Shown here piece after piece: positions 3,001 to 18,247 of a stretch of 64,000 nt of DNA. The notes beneath the pieces were generated by a model. It was not told the origin of the DNA. It searched no databases and saw nothing but the letters and a program-made list of their open reading frames with translations. The stretch's first letter is position 1. Each line of letters opens with the position of its first letter. The position numbers were made by a program, and so were the translations under genes. The DNA is from Selaginella moellendorffii (Eukaryota > Plantae > Lycopodiophyta), in assembly GCF_000143415.4 (NCBI RefSeq), contig NW_003314401.1:62001-126000 (forward strand), written 5' to 3'.

Positions 3001-5874
3001 CCTGCAGGTATGCTTATCCTTGTTTTCTCATTCCGATGACGCTCTAAACCAACCTGCAGCTTATACGCGTTACTGCTCCTTTCCTAAAAAATGCCATGCA
3101 ATCGAGGATATTAACACTCCTCCCTGCAATATTTGGCTGCGTTCGACATCGTCATGCGGCTGTAAGATGTGGTGCGTCAAGATGTATCACAGCGATGGCC
3201 CGAACCTTGAAAGAGACGATCATGACTGCTGTCCTAGCAAAGGCCATGCCAATGCTTACTGATGGTACATCTATGGAGGCAAGACAAGGAGCAGGGATGC
3301 TGGTGACGTTTCTTGTCGAAGGCATGGGAATGGAACTCGTAGGATACGCTCCGTTTCTCATCGTTCCGTTGCTGGGCTGCATGGGTGACAGCAACCAGGT
3401 TGTCAGGCAAAGCGTGACTCACAGTTTTGCCGCCTTGGTTCCACTTCTTCCACTTGCTCGAGGGGTACCACAGCCAGAAGGTATCTCCTCTCTAAGTAAC
3501 TCAGCCGATGCCAGGTTTTTGGAACAATTACTGGATAACAGTCGCGTCGACGACTATAAGCTGGCGTTTGATTTAAAAACTCCGCTACGCAGGTACTTGT
3601 CTCCTAGCTCGCTTTCGTTGGTTGTACTGACTGATGTCCTTTTAACCAGGTATCAACAAGAAGGTATCAACTGGCTAGCTTTCTTAAAGCGTTTTAAGCT
3701 CCATGGTGTTTTGTGCGATGACATGGGTCTGGGAAAGACCCTTCAAGCTTCTGCGATTGTTGCTTCAGATATGGCTGAGCGTATTGCTGCTGGCCAGGGG
3801 AAAGAGTCGACGTTATCTTTGATAGTATGCCCACCAACATTAGTGGGTCACTGGATATACGAGATTGAGAAGTTCATACCGGCCGAACTTCTGAAACCTT
3901 TGCAGTATGTGGGGCAACCTCAGGATCGGTTATACTTGCGCAATCAGTTCTCGGCTCACAGTATTATAATCACATCTTACGATGTGCTTCGAAAGGACAT
4001 CGAGCATCTGAGCCAAATACAGTGGAACTTCTGCATCCTAGATGAAGGACACATCATCAAAAGCGGGAAGTCCAAAATCACTCTGGCTGTAAAGAGAATT
4101 CAAGCCGAGCACAGATTAATTCTCAGCGGTACTCCTATTCAGGTAAATGTCGGCGCTGCTTCTTAAACGCAACTAATCCAAGCTCTGATTTCAGAACAAT
4201 GTACTAGAACTATGGTCATTGTTTGATTTTCTTATGCCGGGTTTCCTTGGAACTGAACGCCAGGTTTAGCTGACGTATAATTGTTTTTTCTTGTGTTTGA
4301 CGGCATCTTGTTCCAGTTCCATGGTAGCTATGGCAAACCTTTGCAAGCTGCAAGAGATCCGAAATGTTCCGCGAAAGAAGCTGAGGCCGGGGTGTTAGCC
4401 ATGGAGGCCTTGCACAAGCAGGTACATTTCGTCCTTGTCACTACGTTCGCTCATGCTGTTATAACTCAGGTCATGCCTTTTCTGTTGCGCCGGACAAAAG
4501 ATGAAGTGCTAGCGGATTTACCTCCCAAAATTATTCAAGACCGTTACTGTGACTTGAGTTCGCTTCAGCTGAAACTTTATGAAAAGTTTGCCTTTTCTCA
4601 AGCCAAGAAGAATGTGGCCACCATGGTTGAGGCGTACGGTGGAAATGCTGATGACCGAGGAAACACGTCAGCTCCTACGCACGTCTTTCAGGTCTTTCTT
4701 TCTCTTTTTTATTGTGCTTCACTAGCGTGTAGTTGATCTTCTATTTTCTTTTTCTCAGGCCCTGCAATACCTGCGAAAAGTTTGCAGTCATCCTGTGCTT
4801 GTCCTAGACGGACCTCTGTCAGAGAACGTCAATGAGGAGAATGGCAGCATGGATATACATGATATTCAAAACTCGCCAAAGCTTCTGGCCTTGCGAGATA
4901 TTCTCGAAGAATGTGGCATCGGTCAATGCAACGGCGATAATTCTACTGCCGGGGGACAACATCGTGTTTTGATCTTTGCACAACTAAAGGTAAAGGTAAA
5001 TGAAGAGGCGTAAGTGCTTATCATCGATTTGGCAGGGTTTTCTTGACATTATTGAAAAGGATTTGTTTCAAACACACATGAAAAGGTTAGTGTGTTCTTT
5101 CAGCTCCGGCTAACTAGCGCTTGTTTTTATATTCAGTGTGACATACATGAGGCTCGATGGCTCCGTTGACGTTAGCAAGCGTTTTGAGATTGTGAAGGCT
5201 TTCAATTCTGATCCAACAATAGACGTGCTTCTTCTCACTACACACGGTACAGCGTCGGCATTTTACTTGTTCTCGGGGCCTGATTGTTATTCATTGTGAA
5301 GTGGGTGGCTTGGGATTAAACCTTACAGCAGCAGACACGGTTGTATTTATGGAGCATGACTGGAATCCTATGCGTGATTTACAGGTAACTTGATCAGAGA
5401 TGCAACAGTGTCGATATCAATGTTCTTTGTACAGGCTATGGACAGATCTCACAGGCTTGGACAACGGCGGGTGGTTAATGTGCATAGACTGATAATGCGT
5501 GGAACTTTAGAGGAGAAGGTCATGAACCTTCAACGCTTCAAGCTTTCCATTGCGAACACGGTTATCAATGCGGACAACGCGAGCATTAGCAGTATGGACA
5601 CAGGCCAGCTTCTCGACTTGTTTACCTTTGACGGGAAGAAGGTACCCAGACACACAGGCTTCCAGTCACTGACTACTAACATCTCTGGTTTGTATTTGTC
5701 CAGGCTAATGTCCCAGGTACGAGCAAGGATAAGGAGGAAGAGGCTGCAGGATCGAGTGGCTCGAAAGGCGGCAAAGGACTCAAGTCGATGCTAAGCTCTT
5801 TGGAGGATCTCTGGGACCAGTCACTATACCACGAGGAGTATAATCTTGGTCAGTTCGTCTCTCGCCTCAAGTGA
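1..5874 (+). CDS. BTAF1: TATA-binding protein-associated factor BTAF1/MOT1 (SNF2 ATPase); multi-exon, 5' end outside window
   Basis: Spliced ORFs give [36 protein letters not shown]-like region, SNF2 motifs [46 protein letters not shown]; ends [16 protein letters not shown] at 5872-5874; GT-AG introns about 46-65 nt. Confidence 0.96.
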
Positions 5875-6123
5875 TGGCTGCGGACGGCGATAAAATGCGT
5901 CACAACATTTTGTTTTTGTGATCTGTAAGTTCCCGGGATAGGTAGGATGTAGGAAGCATTTGTAAATAATTCAAGTGTCTCACAGTTGCAGAGGTACGCA
6001 AGTCTTTGAACAAGCATTTTGTTCAAAGCTTTATCAAACTCCAAAGAACTAAATTTTTATCGGTGTTCTCGGCCTCTCAGCTGTGCATAGCTTACTCCAA
6101 GCCGGGTCATCTTTCGAGGTACT

Positions 6124-7434
6124 TCAGTCGTTTATATCTTCCTCTGGCAATTCAGAGGCATCTATGGCTAACTTTCCTCGCTTGACTCCGAAATCCCAGG
6201 TGATGCTTCTCGGTGGCGGCGGAGGCGAAGAGTACTTGTAGGCATGAGGAGGTGGCACTTGAACAGGAGACTTGGCAGGAACAGGTGGTGGAGATCGATT
6301 ATGATACGTAGGTGGTGGTGGAGGAGAGTGGTAGAAAAGTGGAGGTGGAAGCTTTGTAACAGGCCCAGGTGATGATTTTGGAGGTGGCGGCTTGCTACTT
6401 GGTGGTGGCGATGGCTTCTTAGGTGCCATTGGAGGCGGATACTTGTGAGAAGCTACAGGAGGTGGTGGTAATGGCTTCTGAGGTGCCATTGGAGGCGGAT
6501 ACTTGTGAGAAGTTACAGGAGGTGGTGAAGGATGGATCTGCGGAGGAGGAGTTTTGCGGAAGTGGATTGGAGCCGGAGGTGGATGATGGTATTTCACAGG
6601 AGCTGGAGGTGGTGGGGGTGGCGGGGACTTGTAAATGTATGGATTGAACGGCGACTTAGAAACTGGAGGAGCAACTGGTCGTAGAGATGGTGGTGGCGGA
6701 TGGTGAGAAACAGGCGGAGGAGTGTGAGAATGGTAGCTGGGAACGCTTGGCGGGGGTGGATGATGGTTTGGGACGTGCTTGAACGGTGGCGGTGGTGACG
6801 AGTACTTGTAAACTGGCGGAGGAGGAAGAGGAGGAGCAGCGGCGGTTTTGCAAGCTCCCGGACGTTTGAGAGGCCGGCACGCGAAGGGACCGGAAGTAAA
6901 CACGACCTCTCGCAGGGATTTGTGGACGAGTAGAAGCGGAGCTCCCGTGTGACCATCTCCCATGGAGCTCACCTCATCGCAGTCGCCGGTGCTTGGGCCT
7001 CGCAGAAGCTTGGCTTTGCATCCCTTAACGCCGAAGATGGCTGGAATCTCGTCCATGGGAATGGTGAAGACGCCGTGAGTGTTGGTGTATCCAACGCCGG
7101 AGAAGGTCACGAATCCATACAGGTCCACGCATTTGATGCCTACCTCGGCGTCTGCTCGACACAAGAACGAAGAACTTCTCTCAAACTTCTACCAAAGATG
7201 GTTTTCTTGCGTACCATGGAGAGGGAGGCTCATGTTGCCAACACGTCCGTGCCAGCATCGATCACAGACAACATGGCCTTTGACGAGAATTTTCGGCTTC
7301 TTCATCTGGAACTCGAAGTCGTCGTTTGGATCGAACGCCTCGGGCTCAGCTTCTACTTCTTGTCCCAGAACCGGGAGTGCTACTGCTGCTAGCACCACCA
7401 TCGCTACAAGCAGCAGCAGCGGGAGCTTCTCCAT
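6124..7434 (-). CDS. Secreted Pollen Ole e 1 domain + proline-rich/extensin chimeric cell-wall protein, 2 exons (intron about 7152-7214)
   Basis: Signal peptide MEKLPLLLLVAMVVLAAVALP; VKGHVVCDRC...C...GYTNTHGVF...CKAKL...C...FTSGPF; then SPPPP, YKY and HKYPPP motifs; internal 60-bp direct repeat at 6421-6530. Confidence 0.88.
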
Positions 7435-7737
7435 CGCCAAACCTGGAAGTTCTTTGCTGGCTACATTGAAATATACAGAAGAACCAGAGCGCGTTGGTAG
7501 CAGCTTTGCAGAGGAATTTATCGTGTCTGGATTTTCAGGTACCTTTTGGAGCTATCTGTGTCTGACTGTCGACTCATGACTGCCGACTCACGGGGCGCTC
7601 GTCCTCGGACAGAATGATTACCAGGTTCGCAAAACAAAAGCCTTAAAAATCATGTTTTGATTGAAAAGAGTTCTTACGACTGACTACGCGTTGAGATGAT
7701 TGCCAGATACAGGCGAAGGAGAAAAGAAAACTAGCGA

Positions 7738-9588
7738 TCAATCCCATGCCATGTTCAGTATGGCGTTGGCAACACCTGCTTCATCGATGGTGATGCTGGG
7801 ATCATACTCGAGAGACCTCCCACCAGGAATGGTGAGCGTGAGGCGAAACTTTCTGCCGCTGGCGGCCTCCTCCACGTTCAAGCAGCAATACGACCAGAGG
7901 TACTGCTCATACACAATACGACCAACATGAGAAGCGAGAAAGGAAGAACATCGCTGGGTTTCCACTTACAGTTAGTGGATCGGATCGAAAGTACCTCCGC
8001 TGGCCCCTCTTGCCATCGGGAAAACGCACTCCAACGCGGCAAGTTTCTGGCTCTTCGGGCTTGGGCTCGTCCGGCAGCGCTGGATGCTTGCTGCCGCGGG
8101 CCTTGACATGCTCCGCCGCCGAAGAAGGCTCGGTTTGGCTCTCCAACGAAGCTGCCAAGGCCCGCTGGAGTTCCTGGTCTTCGTCGATATCAGCCGGGCC
8201 TGCCAAGAACAAAGTGAAAAGATTGCTGGCAACTCAGCGTCGAGCTCTACCTTGATCCAGCTGCTGTTGTGGTTGCTGCTGCTGCTGCTGTTGCTGTTGC
8301 TGTTGCTGTTGTTCCACATCTCGTGGTCGCTTTTGAGTGTGGTTCTCCATGGGACCTCTATCCATGAATTGGACAAGATCCTGAAAGTGTTGTAAGTCTC
8401 TATAGAAAACTCTAAGTGGTGTGAATAAAACATATACCTCGAGCAGTCTCTCCGCGCCTACCATACCCTCCCAGGATCTCATCTTCTGGCCAGTTAAAGG
8501 ATCCAGCACCAGAATGGTAGGCATGGTATTCAAGCGGTAGTACGTGCACACCTTCTTTCCTTCCTCGGTGTCATCGTAGATCTAAAACCACCAAAGAAGA
8601 AGTGAGGCCACGAATGCTATCAAACACCATAAATACCTGCCAGAAGACGAAGGTTATCCTCACCGTGTCCTTGACGGCCTCGTGTGCCCAGGTGTCTCTG
8701 TTCAGCTACACAGAAAGCATCAGCTCGTAGATGAGAAAACACAGTTTGCAAGCTTACTTGTGGAGCTATAATCATACCATATGACTCGCAAACTCTGTAT
8801 GGGATTGCAAGTTGATGAGCAACCATTTTCCTTGCTTGGCTGCTTCTGCTTTCGCCTAAACATGCGAAGAAAGATGGTCTCGTCTGGGAACGAAGAAAAG
8901 TGGCGTCCTTCGTACCTGCTCGAAGCTTCCCTCGAAGTTGAGCTCCAGTGGCGGACGGTACAGGGACGCAAGCGTTGGAGCTTTGGCACCCACGGGAGAG
9001 CTCCCAGGGGAGGGCTTGGCGATTCTGGAGTTAAACTCGTCCTCGAAGTTCCGGAAAGCATCCACAGGAGTCGGCTGGACGGGACCTGCTTGCGCCCTTC
9101 TTTGTGCTCTGGAAAACCATCCAAAGAGAATGAGAAAAGGAGATGGTGATCTTCGTTTTCTTACCTGTACTGGAACATATCCTCGTACAAGGCCTCGCGT
9201 TTCACAGGCAGTGGTGGACGAACGTAGTCATCTCCCCCACTGAGAGGAAAAAAATCCTTTCTTTTCATCCAGGAACGAGAAAGAACGAAGGAAAGCTCTC
9301 ACCTTGGAGAAGGGAGCACTACTGGCGGTGGCTCCGCAAGGACAGGCTTGCTCATCGGCGGGGGCTCCGCTGCTAAAGGCGGAGCTCCAATCTCGACACC
9401 TCCGCCAGCGAAAAAGAGCTGAATCGCTTCCTCGAGCTGCCAGTTCGTCGCCTACACAAAATCACTCGGCATTTCCTTCAAGAAGAGCGATCAGGGAGGG
9501 ATCAAACCTCGAGGAACTGGTGGCAGCGATCGGCAGGCTCGCCTACCACCTCCATGAACTGCTCCAGCAACAGCTGCTTGTCTTCCAT
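7738..9588 (-). CDS. PUX7: Plant UBX domain protein (UBA-like, UAS thioredoxin-like, UIM, UBX), CDC48 adaptor, multi-exon
   Basis: MEDKQLLLEQFMEVVGE; LASLYRPPLEL; LNRDTWAHE; ILVLDPLTGQKM; UIM DEDQELQRALAASLE; UBX CRVGVRFPDGKRGQRRYF...TIDEAGVANA; poly-Q at about 8259-8312. Confidence 0.88.
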
Positions 9589-9708
9589 GGCGCTCAATCC
9601 AAATTGCCCTAGCTAGCTGGCCCTAAAGGTACTCTTTTAATCGGCCATTTTAAGTTAACTTACGAAAGTTTAAAGGAGGAGAAAAGACTTGTACAACCAA
9701 ATGAAATT

Positions 9709-10916
9709 CTAGACACTTGAAGGCAACCGGATCATCATCTGGCCCTCCGCCACACTGTCACAAACAAAGAAATCGTAAATTTCATGGAAAAAATGGATTT
9801 TTTCTTCTTTTGATCCATACCTCTTTACGTAGTAGTAGCAGAAATCGGCAAGGATGAATGTCTGGACAATCTCGGCGACCACAACCATGGCAGGCCACAA
9901 GCCATAAGGAATCAAGCTCCGGTGTTTGAGCTGCGTTCCCAGCGTGTAGAAGAGGTAGCCCCGTCCATCTATCAGCTGCAAAAGGAGAAGAAAAATGCGT
10001 TTTTTTACATGACCTTCCTCTTGTCTTTCATACCTGGAGCAGCCAATGCGCACAGTTGATAAATCTTGCAACGCCAAGGGCGAAAACGTAGAGCGCAGTA
10101 AAGGGTTCTATAAGCTGTGGATCAAATCCAAGATAAGTGAGCGAAGAAACATAGAGAATTGGCCTACCTTAGCCTTTTGCATCACCCGAAGCTGAGGCAG
10201 CACGGAGACGGCCTCCAAATACACACAAAACGCCCACAAAACTCTGTTGATAAGGTGGTACCGGATGAGAGGATGAACCAGGATAGCGAGCACTGCGCAT
10301 GGAGCCAGCTGAAAAGGAAAACCAAAAAGGAGTGATAGAACTCAAGTCCCGGACGAGAAGAACAAAGCTCACCACATAGTAGAGTGGCATGTTATCGAGT
10401 TCCTGGACATAAGTTGCCTTGAGATTGGTCCGGATCATATAGATCACCCAGGCCGTGACGAGGAGCGTGGCCGTGTCGAGGAAAGTGTGGATGTTTTGCT
10501 CCATGAAAGTGGAGCAGTAGAGCCGGACGAGAAGAAAAATCGCTGTAAGCTCCTGCGACCGCAAAGACACACCTAAGAAACACGAGAAACACACACTTGT
10601 AAGAAAGTTTTTTAAGTGATTTGAGGCGGCCCTAGCTGTAGCTAACGAGCGATCGAATCGATCGATCGCTCCATGGATCCTTACCGGCGCAATTCTTCTC
10701 CTTCTGGAGCTTGTAGATGAGAATGACGATCCCCAGGGCGTGGACGCACTCGGAGGCGACGAAGAGGGTGTCGTGATCCTTGACGACATACCTGAGGAAG
10801 ACGATCCCAATCACTGCCGCCAGCGCCAGGAGCGCGGCCTTGACGCGGGGATTCTGGCGCTGGATCCTCCAGACGAGCGCCTGGATGGGATTCTTGGACC
10901 GCCGCGCGCTCCCCAT
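9709..10916 (-). CDS. ER lumen protein-retaining receptor family, ERD2-related class with extra N-terminal TM, multi-exon
   Basis: KEKNCAG-VSLRSQELTAIFL, WAFCVYLEAVSVLPQL, EPFTALYVFALGVARF, EIVQTFILADFCYYY. Confidence 0.92.
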
Positions 10917-10988
10917 GCCGAATCTATTCCTCGCTCCTCCCTCGCCCAAAAGAGTTTAAAACTCCAGTTAATAAGCTCCGTACGAGCC

Positions 10989-11053
10989 TAGGGTTTTGTT
11001 CCTTGTCCGTACCTGGGGGATCAATGACGTGGCTGATCTAATCGCTGACGTGG
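10989..11053. promoter_or_regulatory. Telo-box (TAGGGTTT, 10989-10996) plus two TGACGTGG bZIP sites (11025-11032, 11046-11053) in a divergent promoter
   Basis: Exact motif matches; the two TGACGTGG copies are 21 bp apart. Confidence 0.55.
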
Positions 11054-11140
11054 CAGATCCAAGGGTCGCGGCTGTTCCGGGGATATACATTGCTGGAGAA
11101 AACTATGGCGACGCATTGCTAGTTTGGGAGGAGAGAAGAA

Positions 11141-11343
11141 ATGGTGCGACCCGCAAGAACAGCGTCGACAAGCCCCTCTTTGATGCGCCGGCGGAGGCGG
11201 CGCCGAGGGCGAGGAGTAAGATCACCCGATCTTCCAGTGGAACTCGACTCAAAAAATCTCTTTTTTCGCAGAGGCGTAGACGCGGAAGGCACAGGAGAAG
11301 ATCGGCCTCCACGAACACTGGGACGCGAAGCGATCAGGGCTAG
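11141..11343 (+). CDS. Candidate 48-aa Arg-rich protamine-like protein; exons 11141-11215 and 11272-11343
   Basis: GTAAG...TTTTTTCGCAG 56-nt phase-0 intron joins two Arg tracts into MVRPARTASTSPSLMRRRRRRRGRGRRRRGRHRRRSASTNTGTRSDQG; AATAAA about 100 nt after the stop. Confidence 0.5.
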
Positions 11344-11759
11344 GAAAACACACAATCTCCTCGTCTCGCCACTCCAAATCCAATGCCGCTCCACCAACAA
11401 CACGAATCCAATCCTCCCATGATGTTCTTCGCCAAATCGATGTAAATAAAAAGTGCGAATTCGAAAGCGATGATCCAGCACAAGAAGTTCTCCACTTCCA
11501 TTGTTCTTCTCTCCAAAGTCTAAGTTTCTGGAAGGAACTGCGGACATCTCTCGATCTATCTCATAGCGTGTGAGACTTCCTCGAACCAAAAAGCCAGTTT
11601 TTCTAATCGGTGCCAACCTTTGAGATTCTTTTCGCTCTCCAATTCCGCGGGAGAGGAAACGAAATGGTGGAATTTGGAGCGAACTCTCGTTCTCTCGAGT
11701 GCAAAACAATACAAAGGTTTCCTGGAATTCCAAAAGCTTGGTCTTCGTTTAGGGTGGAA

Positions 11760-13160
11760 ATGGCGGCAGTGCGCAGAATCTGTGCGACCGCTGGTAAGAC
11801 GAGCGTGAGTGGTTTCTTGGGCACATCAAAGATCGCCACGAGCAACGAATGGCGGCCTCTCACTTGCTGGATTCCCGCGACGCGGACGAGCAGCAGCCAG
11901 TTTCGGACAAGTTTCCAGGGAAGCAAGCTCAAGATCCCAGCCGAGTTGCAGCCCGCCGTGCGAGAATGGAACCGGCTTGTGAATCGCTTCTCGCAGCGCT
12001 GGAGATACTCCAGCCTCGGCCGCTTGTCAGGGTAACAAAGATCGTTTTTTTTCTATCCTATGATCTTCTTCGAGGGTGATCTTTATTTTGCTATCAGGGG
12101 TGGAGGATACGCTCGACCCGATGTTGCATTGTGGACTTTGATCGGTGCCAACGTTTCGGTGTTCTTCCTGTGGAAGGTTTTCGACCCGGTTTTCATGACC
12201 GAGCATTTCACGGTCAGTTTCTTTCTCTCGTTTTTTCTTTCTAGAAATTCTCTCTTGACAATTGTGACACTCAGATCTCCATGCACAACGTGTTGAGTGG
12301 CCGACTCCACACACTCGTCACAAACTTCTTCAGCCACAACGAGTTCTGGCACTTGGCATCCAACTTACTCGGCCTATACTTTTTTGGCACCGAGGTCTTG
12401 TGATCTCTCCTGTTCTTTTTCGATCCGGATCTTCGCTCTCTCTCGCGTGCTCACTCCACTTCGCAGATCGCTTATAGATTCGGCAGCAGAAGGCTCTACA
12501 TGATCTACTTTGCGGGTGGCCTCGTTAGCTCCTTCGGACACTTGGCTTATAGCTATTACATCTATCCCTGGCTCAAGGTTCGATAAAAGCGCAGCGATTC
12601 TTCTTGTGGATTCTCATATCGTCATTCACATTTTTTGGTTTTCCCAGGGGCTTCGTCACAGCACCTTTGTGGCCCGATTTGTCCCACCAGCGCTGGTGAG
12701 TCGAGAGAAAAGCGTGATCTTCCTCTATCTCTCGCGTGCTGTTTGATGCGCGACACGTTTTTTCCACAGGGCGCCAGTGGAGCCATCAACGCGCTGGTGG
12801 TCCTCAACATCATGCTCAATCCAACGCGCGTCATCTTGGTCGATTTCCTCTTCCCAGTCCCAGCTGCCCTGTTTGTAAGCGATCGATCTTTCCCAAGTTT
12901 TTGTTTTTCCCATTCCAATGCTGTGAGAATTTGACGCGATCGCTCACTCCACAGGGAGCTTACATGATCCTCAAGGATTTGTGGGGAGTTTCCGATGTAA
13001 GTTCCCTTGCCTGGTTTCTTCCAAAGTTCTGGGAAGCGTTCTCTAATGGCTTGCTTGTTTGTCTGCTTGCCAGGTGGCATCCACCGTAAGCCACGTAGGC
13101 CATCTGGGCGGCGCGGTGGTCGGTGCCGTGGCGTGGGTGAGACTACGACGTCACTGGTAA
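11760..13160 (+). CDS. Rhomboid-like intramembrane protease, mitochondrial (PARL/RBL12-like), multi-exon
   Basis: Arg/Ser-rich presequence MAAVRRICATAG; LIGANVSVFFLWK; GRLHTLVTNFFSH...HLASN; catalytic GASGA and SHVGHLGGA. Confidence 0.87.
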
Positions 13161-13336
13161 CTTCTAGTGGTTTCCACGTTTCTCTTCCACGCGCGCGCTT
13201 TTGACCGCGAATGATGGTTGACCTCCCGCCGACTGTTGACCGGTCAAGCCACGCGGGATATTCCTTTACATCCCTTTTTCCGTGTATATGAGAGAGAGGG
13301 CTTTCTTGTGGCCTAATTGGAAAAGGAAGAGACACA

Positions 13337-14248
13337 ATGGCGCTAGCAGGGAGACGAGCAATGCCCCAGATCTCTGGGATAGCTAACAGGTTGTCCGGGA
13401 TGGGCCACTGCCAGAAGAAGAAGACGATCGTGGATCCGCTTCCACTGCCACCGATCTCGCAGGAGGATCACCACCAAGGTTTGATGCCGGAGATTTGCAA
13501 GGCGATGGAGGAGGAGCCGCGGAAGCAGCGAGAGCTCAATTTGGTGTTGCTGGGGAGGCCGGGAGCCGGCAAGGGGACGTTTGGGATCAAGCTCGCGGCG
13601 CTGCTCGACGTTCCTCACATCTCCACTGGCGATTTGATCCGGGAGGAGATGAAGAAGGTGAGCTCCATGTCGCGGCGCATCGCCGAGGTTGTGAGCAAGG
13701 GGAAGCTCCTGGGCGACGAGGAGGTGTTCGAATTGCTCCACTCGCGGCTCCAGGCGGGGGCTGCCAGGGGCGACAAGGGATTCATCCTGGATGGATTCCC
13801 CAGGACGGTGAACCAGGCGATCGTGCTAGACAAGATAGCGGACGTTCACGTAGCTGTGAACTTCGCCCAGGAGCGCGAGGTGTTGATCCAGAAGTGCCTG
13901 GGCCGGAGGGTGTGTGGGGAGTGTGGGCGAGTGTTCAGCATGGCCGATGTTTCAGTGGGCGATCTGAGGATGCCAGCGATTCCTCCGCCGATCCAGTGCC
14001 TGGACAAGATGGTGACGAGGAAGGACGATTCCGAGCAGAGCATCCAGAAGAGGCTCCAGGTTTACGACGAGGAGAGCAAACCAGTGGAGGATTTCTACCG
14101 CAAGCAGGGGAAGCTGGTCAATTTTGATGTTCGCGGGGGCGTGAGCGAGAGCTGGCCCAAGCTGCTCCAGGCCTTGAATCTGGTGGAAGAACAGCAGAGA
14201 TCTAGCGCAAGAACACCGCCACCAGCAATTCCAACGGTTTGGTGTTGA
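13337..14248 (+). CDS. ADK: Adenylate kinase (organellar type), single exon
   Basis: P-loop LLGRPGAGKGT, HISTGDLIR, GFILDGFPRT, LID RRVCGECG, RKDD. Confidence 0.95.
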   Translation: MALAGRRAMPQISGIANRLSGMGHCQKKKTIVDPLPLPPISQEDHHQGLMPEICKAMEEEPRKQRELNLVLLGRPGAGKGTFGIKLAALLDVPHISTGDLIREEMKKVSSMSRRIAEVVSKGKLLGDEEVFELLHSRLQAGAARGDKGFILDGFPRTVNQAIVLDKIADVHVAVNFAQEREVLIQKCLGRRVCGECGRVFSMADVSVGDLRMPAIPPPIQCLDKMVTRKDDSEQSIQKRLQVYDEESKPVEDFYRKQGKLVNFDVRGGVSESWPKLLQALNLVEEQQRSSARTPPPAIPTVWC

Positions 14249-14471
14249 CGGGAAATCGTCGCGTTCCCTTCTATTCTTCCAAGTCTTGGCTGCTAACCCG
14301 ACACGCGAGTATTCTTTTTAACAACGATTTTCCATTGTAACGTTACTTGACGACGAGGAAAGAATTTTGCAAGTAGTGCACAACACGGATTTGATTGAGT
14401 AATTGAAACTTTCCACGTTCTTTAACATGTGCAATGTCATAGCGTTGCGACAAGGGCACGTTCCGTGTCAT

Positions 14472-14590
14472 AAAAAGGTGGTAAAAAGGTGGTAGGGCTT
14501 GGGCAAAAAGGTGGTAGGGTAAAGGTAGGTACGCATGAAAAAAAGGTGGCAGGGTAAAGGTAGGTACGCATGAAAAAAAGGTGGTAGGGT
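14472..14590. repeat. G-rich compound tandem repeat (AAAAAGGTGGYA x5; about 35-bp unit x2)
   Basis: Direct inspection; lies between the convergent 3' ends of ADK and maspardin. Confidence 0.75.
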
Positions 14591-14684
14591 TACTAAAACC
14601 AACTTGTGATTGGTAGAAAAAAAAAGATGGTTGTAAATTACAAGAACAAAGAAAACGATCAAACTTTCAAGCTCGGACAAGTAG

Positions 14685-16274
14685 CTAGTGGCGAACAAAA
14701 CCAAAATTCTTGTACAGCGGCTAACAAACACAGCAAAGAAAAGAGGTGAGAGACTTGCAAGTCGACCTGGAGGTGATTTGCGAGACCCAGTCGCTTGAAC
14801 GAGTCCATGGCGCTTGGAGAGAAGCTCCGGTCGGTGGCTGCTGGACTGCTCGAAGATGGCTCGTCTCTCGCGGCAGAGCTTCTGTCTCCGTCGGGGCTTC
14901 GGCCTTGGTATTGATCGTCGCCGGCGGAGTCCCCGCTTCCACCACTCCCAGGGGATGGGATTGGACGAGCGTCGGGAACGCCTTCCACTCCAACTCTCAT
15001 CAGATGGAGCTGCGAGGCAAAGTTACGAGGATCAGGGGAAAAGACGAGATCGCTGCTACCTGTACGTGAAGTGAAACTTCGGCTGCTCGAGAGAGGAAGG
15101 GGAAATCTCCACCGGACTTTAGCATGGCTTTTCGGGCGGTGGGATATCTGGCAGCCACTTGGTCCTTGAGAGACTGCGGGATGGCACAGTAGTCATTCGT
15201 CTGTAAAGAGCTACGAGTTACGCTTTAGTAAATGTCTTGAAAAGCGGGAATGCTTACGTCCATGATGGTGATGCACGAGTCCGGGAGTGTGATCTGGCCT
15301 ACTGCAGCAGGAGACGTGTTGAGCGTCAAGCGTGATGCGAGATCTTCGCGGGAGAGGGTCTCGAACTGTCGGGAATCGAAACGTAGGATATGAAGTTCCT
15401 CAAAATGAGGCAAATACCTGGGAGACCACGAAATCTATTGAATCGGCAATGAGAGGTTCTTGCGGCCCCTCATGAATTCCTGACAGGATGTATCGCTTTA
15501 GCATGAACTCGGGCGTCCAACTTATCCTGTAAGAAGCGAAGTCTTTGATCAAAACCAGCAGAAAGTTCTTCCTCACAATGGTTTCCAAGAAGTTCCTGAA
15601 GCAAAAGTGTGTGTTTCCAAGAACGTATTTGAGAGAAGTAGCGATTTTACTCTCCTCGGACGCTGCTGAGCAAATAGCTGCGACAAATACCCACCGAGAG
15701 AAGTACCATACAAGTGAACCTTAACAAAAACCAAAGAGAGAAACATCAGAAAAACTCGAAAGCACACCTCGTATCATACTTACATGGTGTGCACCAATTT
15801 GATCCAAAAACTTCTCGAACGAAGCGATCCATTCCTGGTGACTCCACACGGGAGGAGCATCAGCAGCAATTACGTGATAGCCCTGAAAGAAGAATCGAAA
15901 AATACGTTGACAACATTCTTACAACAAAATGCATGAACAGAAGGAAGAAGAACGAAGGAAGAGCAATACCTTGGCGGAGAGGGAGAGAATAATCTTGTAG
16001 AAGACCTCGGCAGTGGAGGAAGTCCCTCCCAGGCACACCAAAGGCGGCAAGAGCTTTGGCCCCGACTGGTAGTACCGCCAGTGCTTGTTTCCCACCTGTG
16101 AGAGGAGATTTCGATCGAGAATCAACCCTGGATGAATAGGGATGGAGTGATCGATCGATTGCGTACCCAGATATGTCGCAGAGGGACGTGAGCCTTGAAA
16201 TGGAGGAAATCGCCAGGAGCTGCTGTTGTGACATCAGTGCCGGCGAGAAGATCGTGGCGCAGCATGCCCTGCAT
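14685..16274 (-). CDS. SPG21: Maspardin-like alpha/beta-hydrolase, multi-exon; last exon uncertain
   Basis: APGDFLHFKAHVP, WRYYQSGPK..PLVCLGG, HLYGTSLGG, LASRLTLN, GGDFPFLSR. Confidence 0.9.
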
Positions 16275-16372
16275 TCCAGACGCTCCACCTCCCAGCTCCG
16301 CCACGCATCAAAACCAAAACCTAGGCCCAGAGCGATGCGTCGCATATTCTCTGCTCGTTTTTTTTAATCACC

Positions 16373-18247
16373 ATGGTGGGCGAGAAGGATCGACTCGCCC
16401 AGGCAGTGAGGAGCTGCATCGATGCCCGGGATCTCTTGCGCGGGAGAGAAGCCCACGCCGCTATCATCCACAGCCGCCACAGCTCCAACACCTTCCTCGC
16501 CAATCTCCTCGTCCTCATGTATGGACGCTGCAATCGCCCAGCGGAGGCATTCCAAGTTTTCGAGTCCACTCAGCAACGCAATTCTTATTCCTGGAACATC
16601 TTGCTCCAGTCATTCTCAGAGAACCGAGACCTGGTTTCCGCCACTGCCACATTCTTTAGAATGCCACACCACGACACAGTCGTGTGGAACGCTTTGCTCT
16701 CAGCAAATGCCCAAGCAAGGCATCTTGAGGAAGCCGAAAAACTCTTCAACGTTTTGCTTGAGAAAGGCCAAAGGTCCATATCAGATCATATCACTAGCTC
16801 TAAATCCAGTGCCCTAACAACTTATGGCAATTATTCGTATGACAGTCTAGATTGTTACAATGAGCGTTCTTGGAACACTATGATCTCAGCATATGCCCAG
16901 TCTGGCCATTTTGATCGTGCTAAAAGCTTGTTCGATGAGATGCCACGCGGACGTGGCTTAGTGACGTGGAATATCATACTCTTTGGCTACGCACGAGAGG
17001 GACAGCTGGCTGGTGCCCGCGCCACGTTCCACAAGATGCCTCTCGTGAGCATAGTGACGTGGACGAGCCTCATGTCGGGACTGGCCGCCAACGGTCAGCT
17101 GGACGAGGCCAAGCAGGAGTTTGACTCCATGCCAGAGAGAAACGTAGTGACGTGGACGGCTCTCTTTCAAGCGCTTGCTGACGCGGCTAGCCACCTCAGC
17201 ACAGCCAGGCTTGTCTTTGCAAAAATGCCGCAGCAACACACGGTGACGTGGAATGCCCTCTTCCACGCCCTTGTCCGCGATGGCAGCCTCGCCGACGGCA
17301 AGGAGGCGTTTGATGCGATGCCCGAGAGGGACGTGATTGCTAAGACCCTGATGATCGCGGCCTACTCGCAAGCCGGGATGATCCAGCAAGCAAAGCTGGT
17401 CTTCGATTCCATCCAGCGCGACGAGCACGACATGCTCTCGCAAACCGAGATGATCAAATGCTACGTCCAGCACGGGCTTCTCGAGGAGGCTCAAAACATC
17501 ATGGATTCGATGCAGCATTTGGACGTTGTGATCCAGACTTTGATGATCGCTGCATATGCCGAGAGAGGGCATTTTCTGGAATCGAGAAAACTCGTCGACT
17601 CGATGGAGTTCAGGGACATTCTAGCTTGGAACATCATGGTCACTGGATACGCTCGCCACGAGAAGCTTGTCGAGGCCAGAGATCTCTTCCAGAAAATGCC
17701 AGCCACAGATCTTATAGCCTGGAACGCCATGATCGCAGTGAATGCCCAAAAGGGGCATCTGGACGAAGCGCGTTGGATCTTCAACATAATGCCTGCTCGC
17801 GACACCATCTCCTGGAACGCAATGCTCACTGGCTACAGCGTCGACAGGGAGAGGGCGATGGGCTTCTTCCAGATCATGAGCCACGAAGGCTGGGAGATCG
17901 ACGAGGTCGCAGCCACGATCGTCCTGGCAGCGCGCAGCCACTTGGGAATGGTGGAGGAGAGCCGGACCTTCTTCCTGTCCATGGCGAGCGACTATGGAAT
18001 CGAGGCGACGAGGGAGCAGTACCGATGCATGGTGGACGCTCTCGGTCGATCGGGCCGGCTTGACGACGCACAGGAGCTCGTAGAAACGATGCCTTTTCTT
18101 CCCGAGGCCGTCTCGTGGAAGACGATGCTCAGCGCTTGCAAGCTCCACCGCGAGGCCGAGCTCGCAGCTCGAGCAGCCGAGAAGGTATCGGAGCTAGAGC
18201 CGGGGAATTCAGCACCTTACATGATGCTCGCCAGCATCGTCTCGTAG
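16373..18247 (+). CDS. PLS-class PPR protein with E domain, no DYW, single exon
   Basis: Repeated MPER/xxWNxM motifs; YRCMVDALGRSGRL, MPFLPEAVSWKTMLSAC, LEPGNSAPY. Confidence 0.93.
   Translation: MVGEKDRLAQAVRSCIDARDLLRGREAHAAIIHSRHSSNTFLANLLVLMYGRCNRPAEAFQVFESTQQRNSYSWNILLQSFSENRDLVSATATFFRMPHHDTVVWNALLSANAQARHLEEAEKLFNVLLEKGQRSISDHITSSKSSALTTYGNYSYDSLDCYNERSWNTMISAYAQSGHFDRAKSLFDEMPRGRGLVTWNIILFGYAREGQLAGARATFHKMPLVSIVTWTSLMSGLAANGQLDEAKQEFDSMPERNVVTWTALFQALADAASHLSTARLVFAKMPQQHTVTWNALFHALVRDGSLADGKEAFDAMPERDVIAKTLMIAAYSQAGMIQQAKLVFDSIQRDEHDMLSQTEMIKCYVQHGLLEEAQNIMDSMQHLDVVIQTLMIAAYAERGHFLESRKLVDSMEFRDILAWNIMVTGYARHEKLVEARDLFQKMPATDLIAWNAMIAVNAQKGHLDEARWIFNIMPARDTISWNAMLTGYSVDRERAMGFFQIMSHEGWEIDEVAATIVLAARSHLGMVEESRTFFLSMASDYGIEATREQYRCMVDALGRSGRLDDAQELVETMPFLPEAVSWKTMLSACKLHREAELAARAAEKVSELEPGNSAPYMMLASIVS

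Follow-up and report, generated by a model that had tools for sequence, protein, structure and literature searches.

Arginine-rich products of unannotated short open reading frames (sORFs) are best documented in human cells, where 24% of Ribo-seq-supported small ORF products contain an arginine-rich motif and where NISM, encoded in the 5′UTR of HDAC5, is a functional nucleolar microprotein (PMC12934739). Arginine-rich peptides of 3–15 amino acids encoded by upstream ORFs (uORFs) bind the translation machinery and some of them repress downstream translation in an arginine-dependent manner (Sandmann et al. 2023, PMC10032668). Clustered arginine is also characteristic of protamines, and proteins of the protamine or protamine-like type are present in non-seed plants whose sperm are motile (PMC9668745; PMC10858212). 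The protamines of Marchantia, the only plant protamines characterised at the sequence level, are cleavage products of male-specific H1 histone precursors (D'Ippolito et al. 2019, cited in PMC10858212). The literature that we searched describes no lycophyte protamine and no Selaginella protamine gene, nor does it describe a conserved-peptide uORF (CPuORF) for rhomboid genes; a search of it for ribosome-profiling or proteome data on S. moellendorffii likewise gave nothing.

A preliminary description of 64,000 nt of Selaginella moellendorffii DNA (the whole stretch analysed, here called the window) proposed that a two-exon micro-gene encoding a short arginine-rich peptide lies between an ERD2-like gene and a rhomboid gene. 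The analysed DNA is 100% identical to scaffold GL377705.1 (L002) and the second S. moellendorffii haplotype is represented by GL377733.1 (L001); neither record carries any annotation in the interval between the two genes. We report here that this interval is not empty, and we correct the local annotation: the micro-gene is a real, transcribed and spliced two-exon unit that annotation has missed. What its ORF does is a separate question, to which we give graded answers below.

A spliced two-exon unit and its neighbours

The preliminary description obtained its reading frame by removing a 56-nt intron with a GTAAG donor, an operation that joins two separate arginine tracts in phase 0. The intron is confirmed both in the sequence and in RNA contigs, and the phase-0 joining agrees with these contigs and with the comparison of haplotypes. 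Translation of the spliced frame reproduces exactly the predicted peptide of 48 residues with 19 arginines and no lysine. This peptide includes 11 Ser/Thr residues, has a calculated pI of 12 and a mass of 5.7 kDa, and is around 40% arginine overall, with 16 arginines concentrated in a 20-residue core between Ser/Thr flanks. All six arginine codons are used (CGA 4, AGA 4, AGG 4, CGC 3, CGG 3, CGT 1), as had been stated, and Tandem Repeats Finder detects no repeat in the ORF, which rules out an origin from a microsatellite or tandem repeat. The features of the locus are collected in Table 1.

Table 1. Features of the micro-gene locus and RNA contigs placed on it (window coordinates)
Feature	Position	Strand	Basis or remarks
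ERD2-like gene (ER lumen protein-retaining receptor family, SELMODRAFT_162537 / 270080)	9709..10916	-	Homology; RNA contigs skip introns
Bidirectional promoter, ~128 bp, from ERD2-like 5′ end (~10941, -) to micro-gene transcript (+)	10942..11068	.	Our reading of contig ends and of no RNA cover over 10974-11068
5′ leader of short transcript	11069..11140	+	344-nt X2 contig; true start at or before 11069
ORF part 1, 25 codons, MVRPARTASTSPSLMRRRRRRRGRG	11141..11215	+	Sequence and translation; no haplotype differences
Intron, 56 nt, GT..AG, GTAAGA to TTTTTTCGCAG	11216..11271	+	Joint 11215/11272 in X2 and X7
ORF part 2, 23 codons plus TAG (11341-11343), RRRRGRHRRRSASTNTGTRSDQG	11272..11343	+	Sequence and translation; no haplotype differences
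3′ untranslated end with AATAAA (11445-11450); likely poly(A) site ~11453-11470	11344..11468	+	Contig ends
Spacer and rhomboid 5′ leader	11469..11759	+	Continuous cover in run X1 only
Rhomboid gene, 8 exons, 299 aa	11760..13160	+	Seven GT..AG joints in all runs; rebuilt CDS; PF01694 on annotated product
X2 contig, 344 nt	11069-11215 joined to 11272-11468		Spliced; haplotype A alleles
X7 contig, 261 nt	11137-11215 joined to 11272-11453		Spliced; other-haplotype (B) alleles at 11356, 11369, 11388
X3 contig	11198-11453		Intron retained
X1 contig, 995 nt	From exactly 11272, unbroken to 12030		On through rhomboid introns 1 and 2; read-through form

Contigs from four runs (X1, X2, X3 and X7), belonging to four studies and of a kind that we had to guess, were placed on positions 9500-13500. 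All 12 neighbouring introns (five in the ERD2-like gene and seven in the rhomboid gene) are skipped in every one of the four runs, and we therefore treat the runs as RNA-derived. The evidence for the micro-gene takes the form of assembled contigs, whose ends approximate the ends of molecules, whose strand is taken from the GT..AG borders, which carry no measure of abundance and any one of which may merge overlapping separate transcripts. The 11215/11272 junction, with unambiguous GT..AG borders, is found in contigs of two independent studies (X2 and X7) and, given the alleles that these carry, spliced RNA arises from both haplotypes; a stable, processed transcript that carries the ORF, as a microprotein gene should produce, is accordingly present.

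At their 3′ ends the contigs stop at 11453 (X3 and X7) or 11468 (X2), which is 3-18 nt beyond the AATAAA. This signal, expected from the preliminary description some 100 nt downstream of the ORF, sits 102 nt past the stop codon. Over 11510-11643 there is no or nearly no cover in X2, X3 and X7 (in X7 it is faint), and the rhomboid contigs of these runs start at 11755, 11700 and 11800, respectively. Because contigs stop after the AATAAA and are followed by a gap to 11700-11800 in three of the four runs, the main form looks like a separate RNA of ~340 nt, made up of a 72-nt leader, a 147-nt ORF and a tail of ~125 nt. No poly(A) tail is seen in the contigs of the four runs. The ORF and the rhomboid CDS share a contig in X1 only, and contigs do not prove single molecules; our reading of the X1 contig is that a minor fraction of the RNA reads through into the rhomboid gene.

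The organisation of the short form is that of an mRNA, with a leader of 72 nt, a good ATG context, a single intron inside the ORF and a 3′ end of ~125 nt with a conserved AATAAA. The ATG at 11141-11143 lies in the context GAA-ATG-G, with G at both -3 and +4. Ahead of it, the leader holds a mini-uORF of five codons (MATHC) with an ATG in strong context at 11105 and a stop at 11120-11122, ending 18 nt before ATG 11141, where it would lower initiation on molecules that start at 11069. The stop codon of the micro-gene ORF lies 3′ of the sole exon junction, and the short form is for that reason no substrate of nonsense-mediated decay. The TATA-like octamer of the preliminary description, GATATACA, is indeed present (11082-11089) but falls inside the transcript: the X2 contig begins at 11069, upstream of the octamer, which cannot then be the TATA box of that start. 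One other arrangement was considered and rejected, namely alternative splicing that would join exon 1 to rhomboid exon 2 and so make it a presequence, given that the donor is in phase 0 and the acceptor in phase 2, and that no such joint is seen.

On the other side of the locus, the ERD2-like CDS starts with an ATG at 10916 on the minus strand and the 5′ end of the gene, at ~10941, is marked by contig ends at 10940/10941, one contig passing directly into adapter sequence. Positions 10974-11068 have no RNA cover in any of the four runs. We read the DNA between the two 5′ ends as a compact promoter of ~128 bp common to the ERD2-like gene and the micro-gene. Within it lie a telo-box, TAGGGTTT (10989-10996), and a direct repeat of TGACGTGGC in two copies (11025-11033 and 11046-11054) at a spacing of 21 bp. 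We take TGACGTGG to resemble an unfolded-protein-response element, which would suit the ERD2-like gene; telo-box and TGACGTGG motifs are typical of promoters of the housekeeping and unfolded-protein-response types rather than of male-germline promoters. In the other haplotype, both TGACGTGGC cores are intact and the dinucleotide immediately 5′ of each is different, while 13 nt (11003-11015) of the promoter are deleted. The first ERD2-like intron (10573-10684) contains a (CGAT)n tract of ~8 copies (10646-10679), differs between haplotypes at 10610, 10625 and 10646, and is spanned in X7 by a low-depth unspliced contig (10560-10712).

The rhomboid gene is annotated with a product of 331 aa on the haplotype analysed here (ATG 11664) and of 299 aa on the second haplotype. 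There, the in-frame ATG further upstream is disrupted by a 2-nt indel at ~11699 and, as RNA contigs in addition start at 11700-11800, ATG 11760 is likely to be the true start and the 331-aa model over-extended. Just past the rhomboid stop, X1 has a 9-nt insertion, TAAAAGCAC, after 13170, probably a 3′ UTR allele. Two further contigs, of 2,069 nt in X3 and 2,088 nt in X7, each cover the spliced rhomboid gene together with an entire single-exon adenylate kinase gene (13337-14248; region covered 11700-14270); the two CDSs are 176 nt apart, and the contigs reflect either overlapping transcripts or a read-through, two-gene RNA. A search that used the ADK protein as an anchor for RNA contigs reaching the leader returned the genome record as its sole match.

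Divergence of the two haplotypes

The two haplotypes were aligned over 13.2 kb (3709-16916, L002 versus L001), in which they show 199-200 differences (1.5% overall). This divergence is partitioned, with ~0.4-0.8% in CDS versus ~3-4% in introns and intergenic DNA, so that comparing two haplotypes can serve, if with low power, to screen this genome for constrained elements that lack annotation. Close to the micro-gene, neighbouring CDS differ at 0.4-0.8% (0.66% pooled), rhomboid introns at 4.2% and pooled local non-coding DNA (2,906 nt) at 2.8%. The micro-gene itself has four differences in the 72 nt of its leader (11069-11140), four in the 56 nt of its intron (three substitutions and a 1-nt deletion) and four in the 125 nt of its 3′ end (11344-11468), where the AATAAA is unchanged. 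The parts of the unit outside the ORF thus have 12 differences in 253 nt and vary at 3-7%. The two ORF parts have none in 147 nt; the other haplotype thus keeps both the frame and the arginine content, whose loss there the preliminary description had named among the refutations of its proposal. As the intron measures 56 nt in one haplotype and 55 nt in the other, the two share a reading frame only once it has been spliced out.

How surprising the absence of differences is depends on the reference chosen. The probability of finding none in the ORF is 0.016 when calculated analytically at the pooled local non-coding rate, 0.003 from sliding 147-nt windows of local non-coding DNA, ~0.004 when the 12 variants are scattered randomly over the 400-nt unit and 0.012 when each base is given its own rate; with the CDS rate it becomes 0.38. 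Rates stratified by GC content give 0.23, and 172 scattered local non-coding positions with a local GC of at least 0.6 likewise have 0 differences. Within non-coding DNA, G/C sites differ more often than A/T sites (2.7% versus 1.9%), which counts against a purely mutational explanation of GC-rich invariance. The variant-free runs extend from 4 nt 5′ of the ATG to 12 nt 3′ of the stop and are the two longest in the intergenic interval of 818 nt; event-free runs of 103-155 nt occur elsewhere in local non-coding DNA. A local tract of identity by descent, which would also be free of differences, is excluded because the intron that separates the two invariant exons is variable.

We regard this comparison as moderate evidence for constraint on the arginine-rich ORF. 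Set against its flanks, the ORF appears as purifying selection would leave it (P ~0.004-0.016), the measure being one of two haplotypes only and the GC-stratified value standing at 0.23. An ORF with zero changes offers no contrast of synonymous with non-synonymous sites, and constraint on the protein and constraint on the nucleotide sequence are inseparable in these data.

Neither the length of the ORF nor its richness in arginine is, alone, beyond what local composition leads one to expect. When the 344-nt transcript is shuffled, 21% of the resulting sequences contain an ORF of at least 48 codons; 10-mers with at least seven arginines turn up at eight places when the window is translated in six frames, one of these places being the minus strand of the micro-gene's own arginine tract (PRPRRRLRRR); and, given a real intron, the tracts would be fused in phase by chance about once in three times. 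The features that do exceed chance are the confirmed splicing and the lack of any haplotype difference in the ORF.

Sequence searches returned little. The 48-aa peptide and unspliced ORFs of 93 aa and 115 aa have no exact counterpart in a collection of 15 billion proteins; a word-index homology search with the peptide, by its nature blind to uncalled 48-aa ORFs, gave 84 candidates, none with E<=10; and a 110-aa minus-strand ORF over the same DNA, used as a proxy for contigs of relatives, had no match. Because gene callers evidently never call the ORF, these blank peptide and proxy searches are uninformative and do not weigh against a peptide that is young or confined to one lineage. Searches of Pfam and PDB with the peptide sequence gave rows at chance level only, the sole Pfam row being Spem1 (E=7.9). 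A structured RNA can be set aside: the micro-gene transcript matches no Rfam family, and its folding energy is no lower than that of shuffles, with z = +0.8 for transcript and ORF alike.

Readings of the arginine-rich frame

The mRNA architecture of the short form and the invariance specific to the ORF lead us to place highest, tentatively and with somewhat less than even confidence, the reading that the unit specifies a translated, very basic and intrinsically disordered micro-protein, with a predicted mass of 5.7 kDa and pI of 12. A plus-strand RNA starts at or before 11069, ~128 bp from the 5′ end of the divergent ERD2-like gene, and loses its 56-nt intron; to judge from contig ends, it finishes ~10-20 nt after the AATAAA in most runs, giving an mRNA-shaped molecule of ~340 nt. 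Its 48 codons would be translated into a disordered arginine-rich peptide, of which the 16-in-20 core would bind RNA or DNA and, by analogy to NISM and other animal microproteins from GC-rich leaders, would serve as a nuclear or nucleolar targeting patch. In the minor read-through form this ORF precedes the rhomboid CDS, where it and seven further upstream AUGs would together present a strong barrier to translation. Expression of the micro-gene looks general rather than sperm-specific, judged from four arbitrary runs.

Somewhat doubtful, in our estimation, is the main rival, the reading that nothing is encoded at all, the ERD2-like bidirectional promoter simply firing a short divergent RNA that is spliced, polyadenylated and non-coding. 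The GC- and purine-rich first 250 nt would then read as arginine in one frame by chance, with the invariance between haplotypes either a matter of chance too or a general property of GC-rich patches. Arginine tracts are a common by-product of CG/AG-rich sequence, as the eight arginine-rich 10-mers of the window, among them one on the strand opposite the tract, illustrate, and the frequencies of long ORFs in shuffles and of in-phase fusion, the blank homologue and family searches (Pfam, PDB, word-index) and the mini-uORF just 5′ of ATG 11141 are all in keeping with an incidental frame. The same is true of the invariant GC-rich positions nearby (0 of 172), with the P of 0.23 that follows for the ORF, and of the event-free runs elsewhere in local non-coding DNA. 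Counting against an incidental frame, the two longest variant-free runs in the 818-nt interval coincide with the two ORF parts, while elsewhere this RNA varies, in leader, intron and 3′ end alike; variability is not inherently lower at G/C bases; and the architecture of the transcript is of the mRNA type. The micro-gene RNA does resemble divergent promoter transcripts in starting ~128 bp from the 5′ end of a gene on the opposite strand, in being short and in ending at the first poly(A) signal, but differs from them in having an ORF devoid of haplotype variation within an RNA that otherwise varies.

The preliminary description had offered a uORF as its own alternative, in which the transcript is mainly a long rhomboid leader and the polybasic ORF stalls or captures ribosomes, so limiting rhomboid translation. 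Part of this survives: it fits the minor read-through form, seen in one run as the unbroken X1 contig, and there is the faint X7 cover over 11510-11643 to add to it, as well as the precedent of arginine-dependent repression by uORF peptides (PMC10032668). It does not fit the main form, which appears to end before the rhomboid gene: contigs of three of the four runs end after the AATAAA and leave a gap, the X1 contig itself could merge overlapping separate transcripts, and in a long leader with eight upstream AUGs a single ORF adds little specific control. As an account of the locus we judge it improbable. Compared with the peptides of Sandmann et al. (2023), the micro-gene ORF is likewise polybasic and, in the read-through form, lies upstream of the rhomboid CDS; it differs in its length (48 aa versus 3–15 aa) and in belonging to an RNA that, in its main form, appears to end before the rhomboid gene.

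Given that protein- and nucleotide-level constraint cannot be told apart here, the invariant blocks might be held constant as DNA or RNA rather than as codons, for example as exonic splicing enhancers, rich in purines, on either side of a very short intron, or as a promoter-proximal, CpG-rich and GC-skewed element of the bidirectional promoter. In favour of this, all synonymous sites are invariant where ~1.2 synonymous changes would be expected under neutrality, both blocks abut splice sites, GC skew is positive over 11000-11300 and the ORF contains 19 CpGs. Yet there is no RNA structure signal (z = +0.8) and no Rfam family, and the blocks follow the ATG and the stop codon rather than the ends of the exons, exon 1 being variable 5′ of the ATG and exon 2 being variable 3′ of the stop. 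We give an element of this kind only a slim chance.

This leaves the function that the preliminary description had put forward, that of a protamine-like, chromatin-condensing sperm protein. On this reading the peptide would be a sperm nuclear basic protein that takes the place of histones and compacts the chromatin of the flagellated sperm in this lycophyte. The composition fits: the peptide shows the arginine cluster of a protamine (19 in 48 residues, 16 of them in the 20-residue core, pI 12), it has no lysine and its flanks are rich in Ser/Thr, and protamines or protamine-like proteins do occur in other non-seed plants with motile sperm. Beyond composition the claim finds no support. RNA from the locus appears in all four of the arbitrary RNA-like runs, from four studies and of unnamed tissue, beside that of housekeeping neighbours, which tends to argue against restriction to the male germline, and the promoter is common to the ERD2-like gene, with its telo-box and TGACGTGG motifs. 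Neither an H1 nor a protamine family is matched in Pfam: the Marchantia protamines, according to the work cited in PMC10858212, derive from H1 histones, and an H1 precursor combines a winged-helix domain with an arginine-rich tail, whereas the micro-gene has a 48-aa ORF with no linker-histone domain. The peptide is thus like protamines, including the H1-derived ones of Marchantia, in being short, with clustered arginines and Ser/Thr flanks, and unlike them in having no H1 or winged-helix ancestry and in its apparently general expression from a housekeeping-type bidirectional promoter. A sperm protamine is, in our view, very unlikely. We attach equally little credence to a broader version, in which a stand-alone arginine-rich protein that condenses chromatin or nucleic acid, in sperm or in some other state of compact chromatin, would have arisen de novo from a GC-rich promoter-proximal transcript and not from histone H1. 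At present the finding has no bearing on which proteins condense lycophyte sperm chromatin.

Place among arginine-rich sORFs

Returning to the micro-protein that we tentatively favour, the micro-gene is a candidate member of a group already known, that of sORFs for arginine-rich microproteins. Like NISM and similar products, its peptide is very short, disordered and arginine-rich and comes from an unannotated ORF in a GC-rich, promoter-proximal transcript, and by analogy it may likewise be expected to bind nucleic acid and to target the nucleolus. The differences are that the micro-gene belongs to a plant and has a spliced transcript and a poly(A) signal to itself, rather than being a uORF of an annotated mRNA, that there is no sequence similarity between the peptides, and that the Selaginella peptide is a predicted product.

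If the peptide is made, the locus would offer a clear case, in a plant, of a spliced micro-gene overlooked by annotation pipelines, with its own side of a promoter, its own intron and poly(A) signal, and a signature of constraint within the species. It could then serve as a test case for the emergence of arginine-rich microproteins from GC-rich leader sequence.
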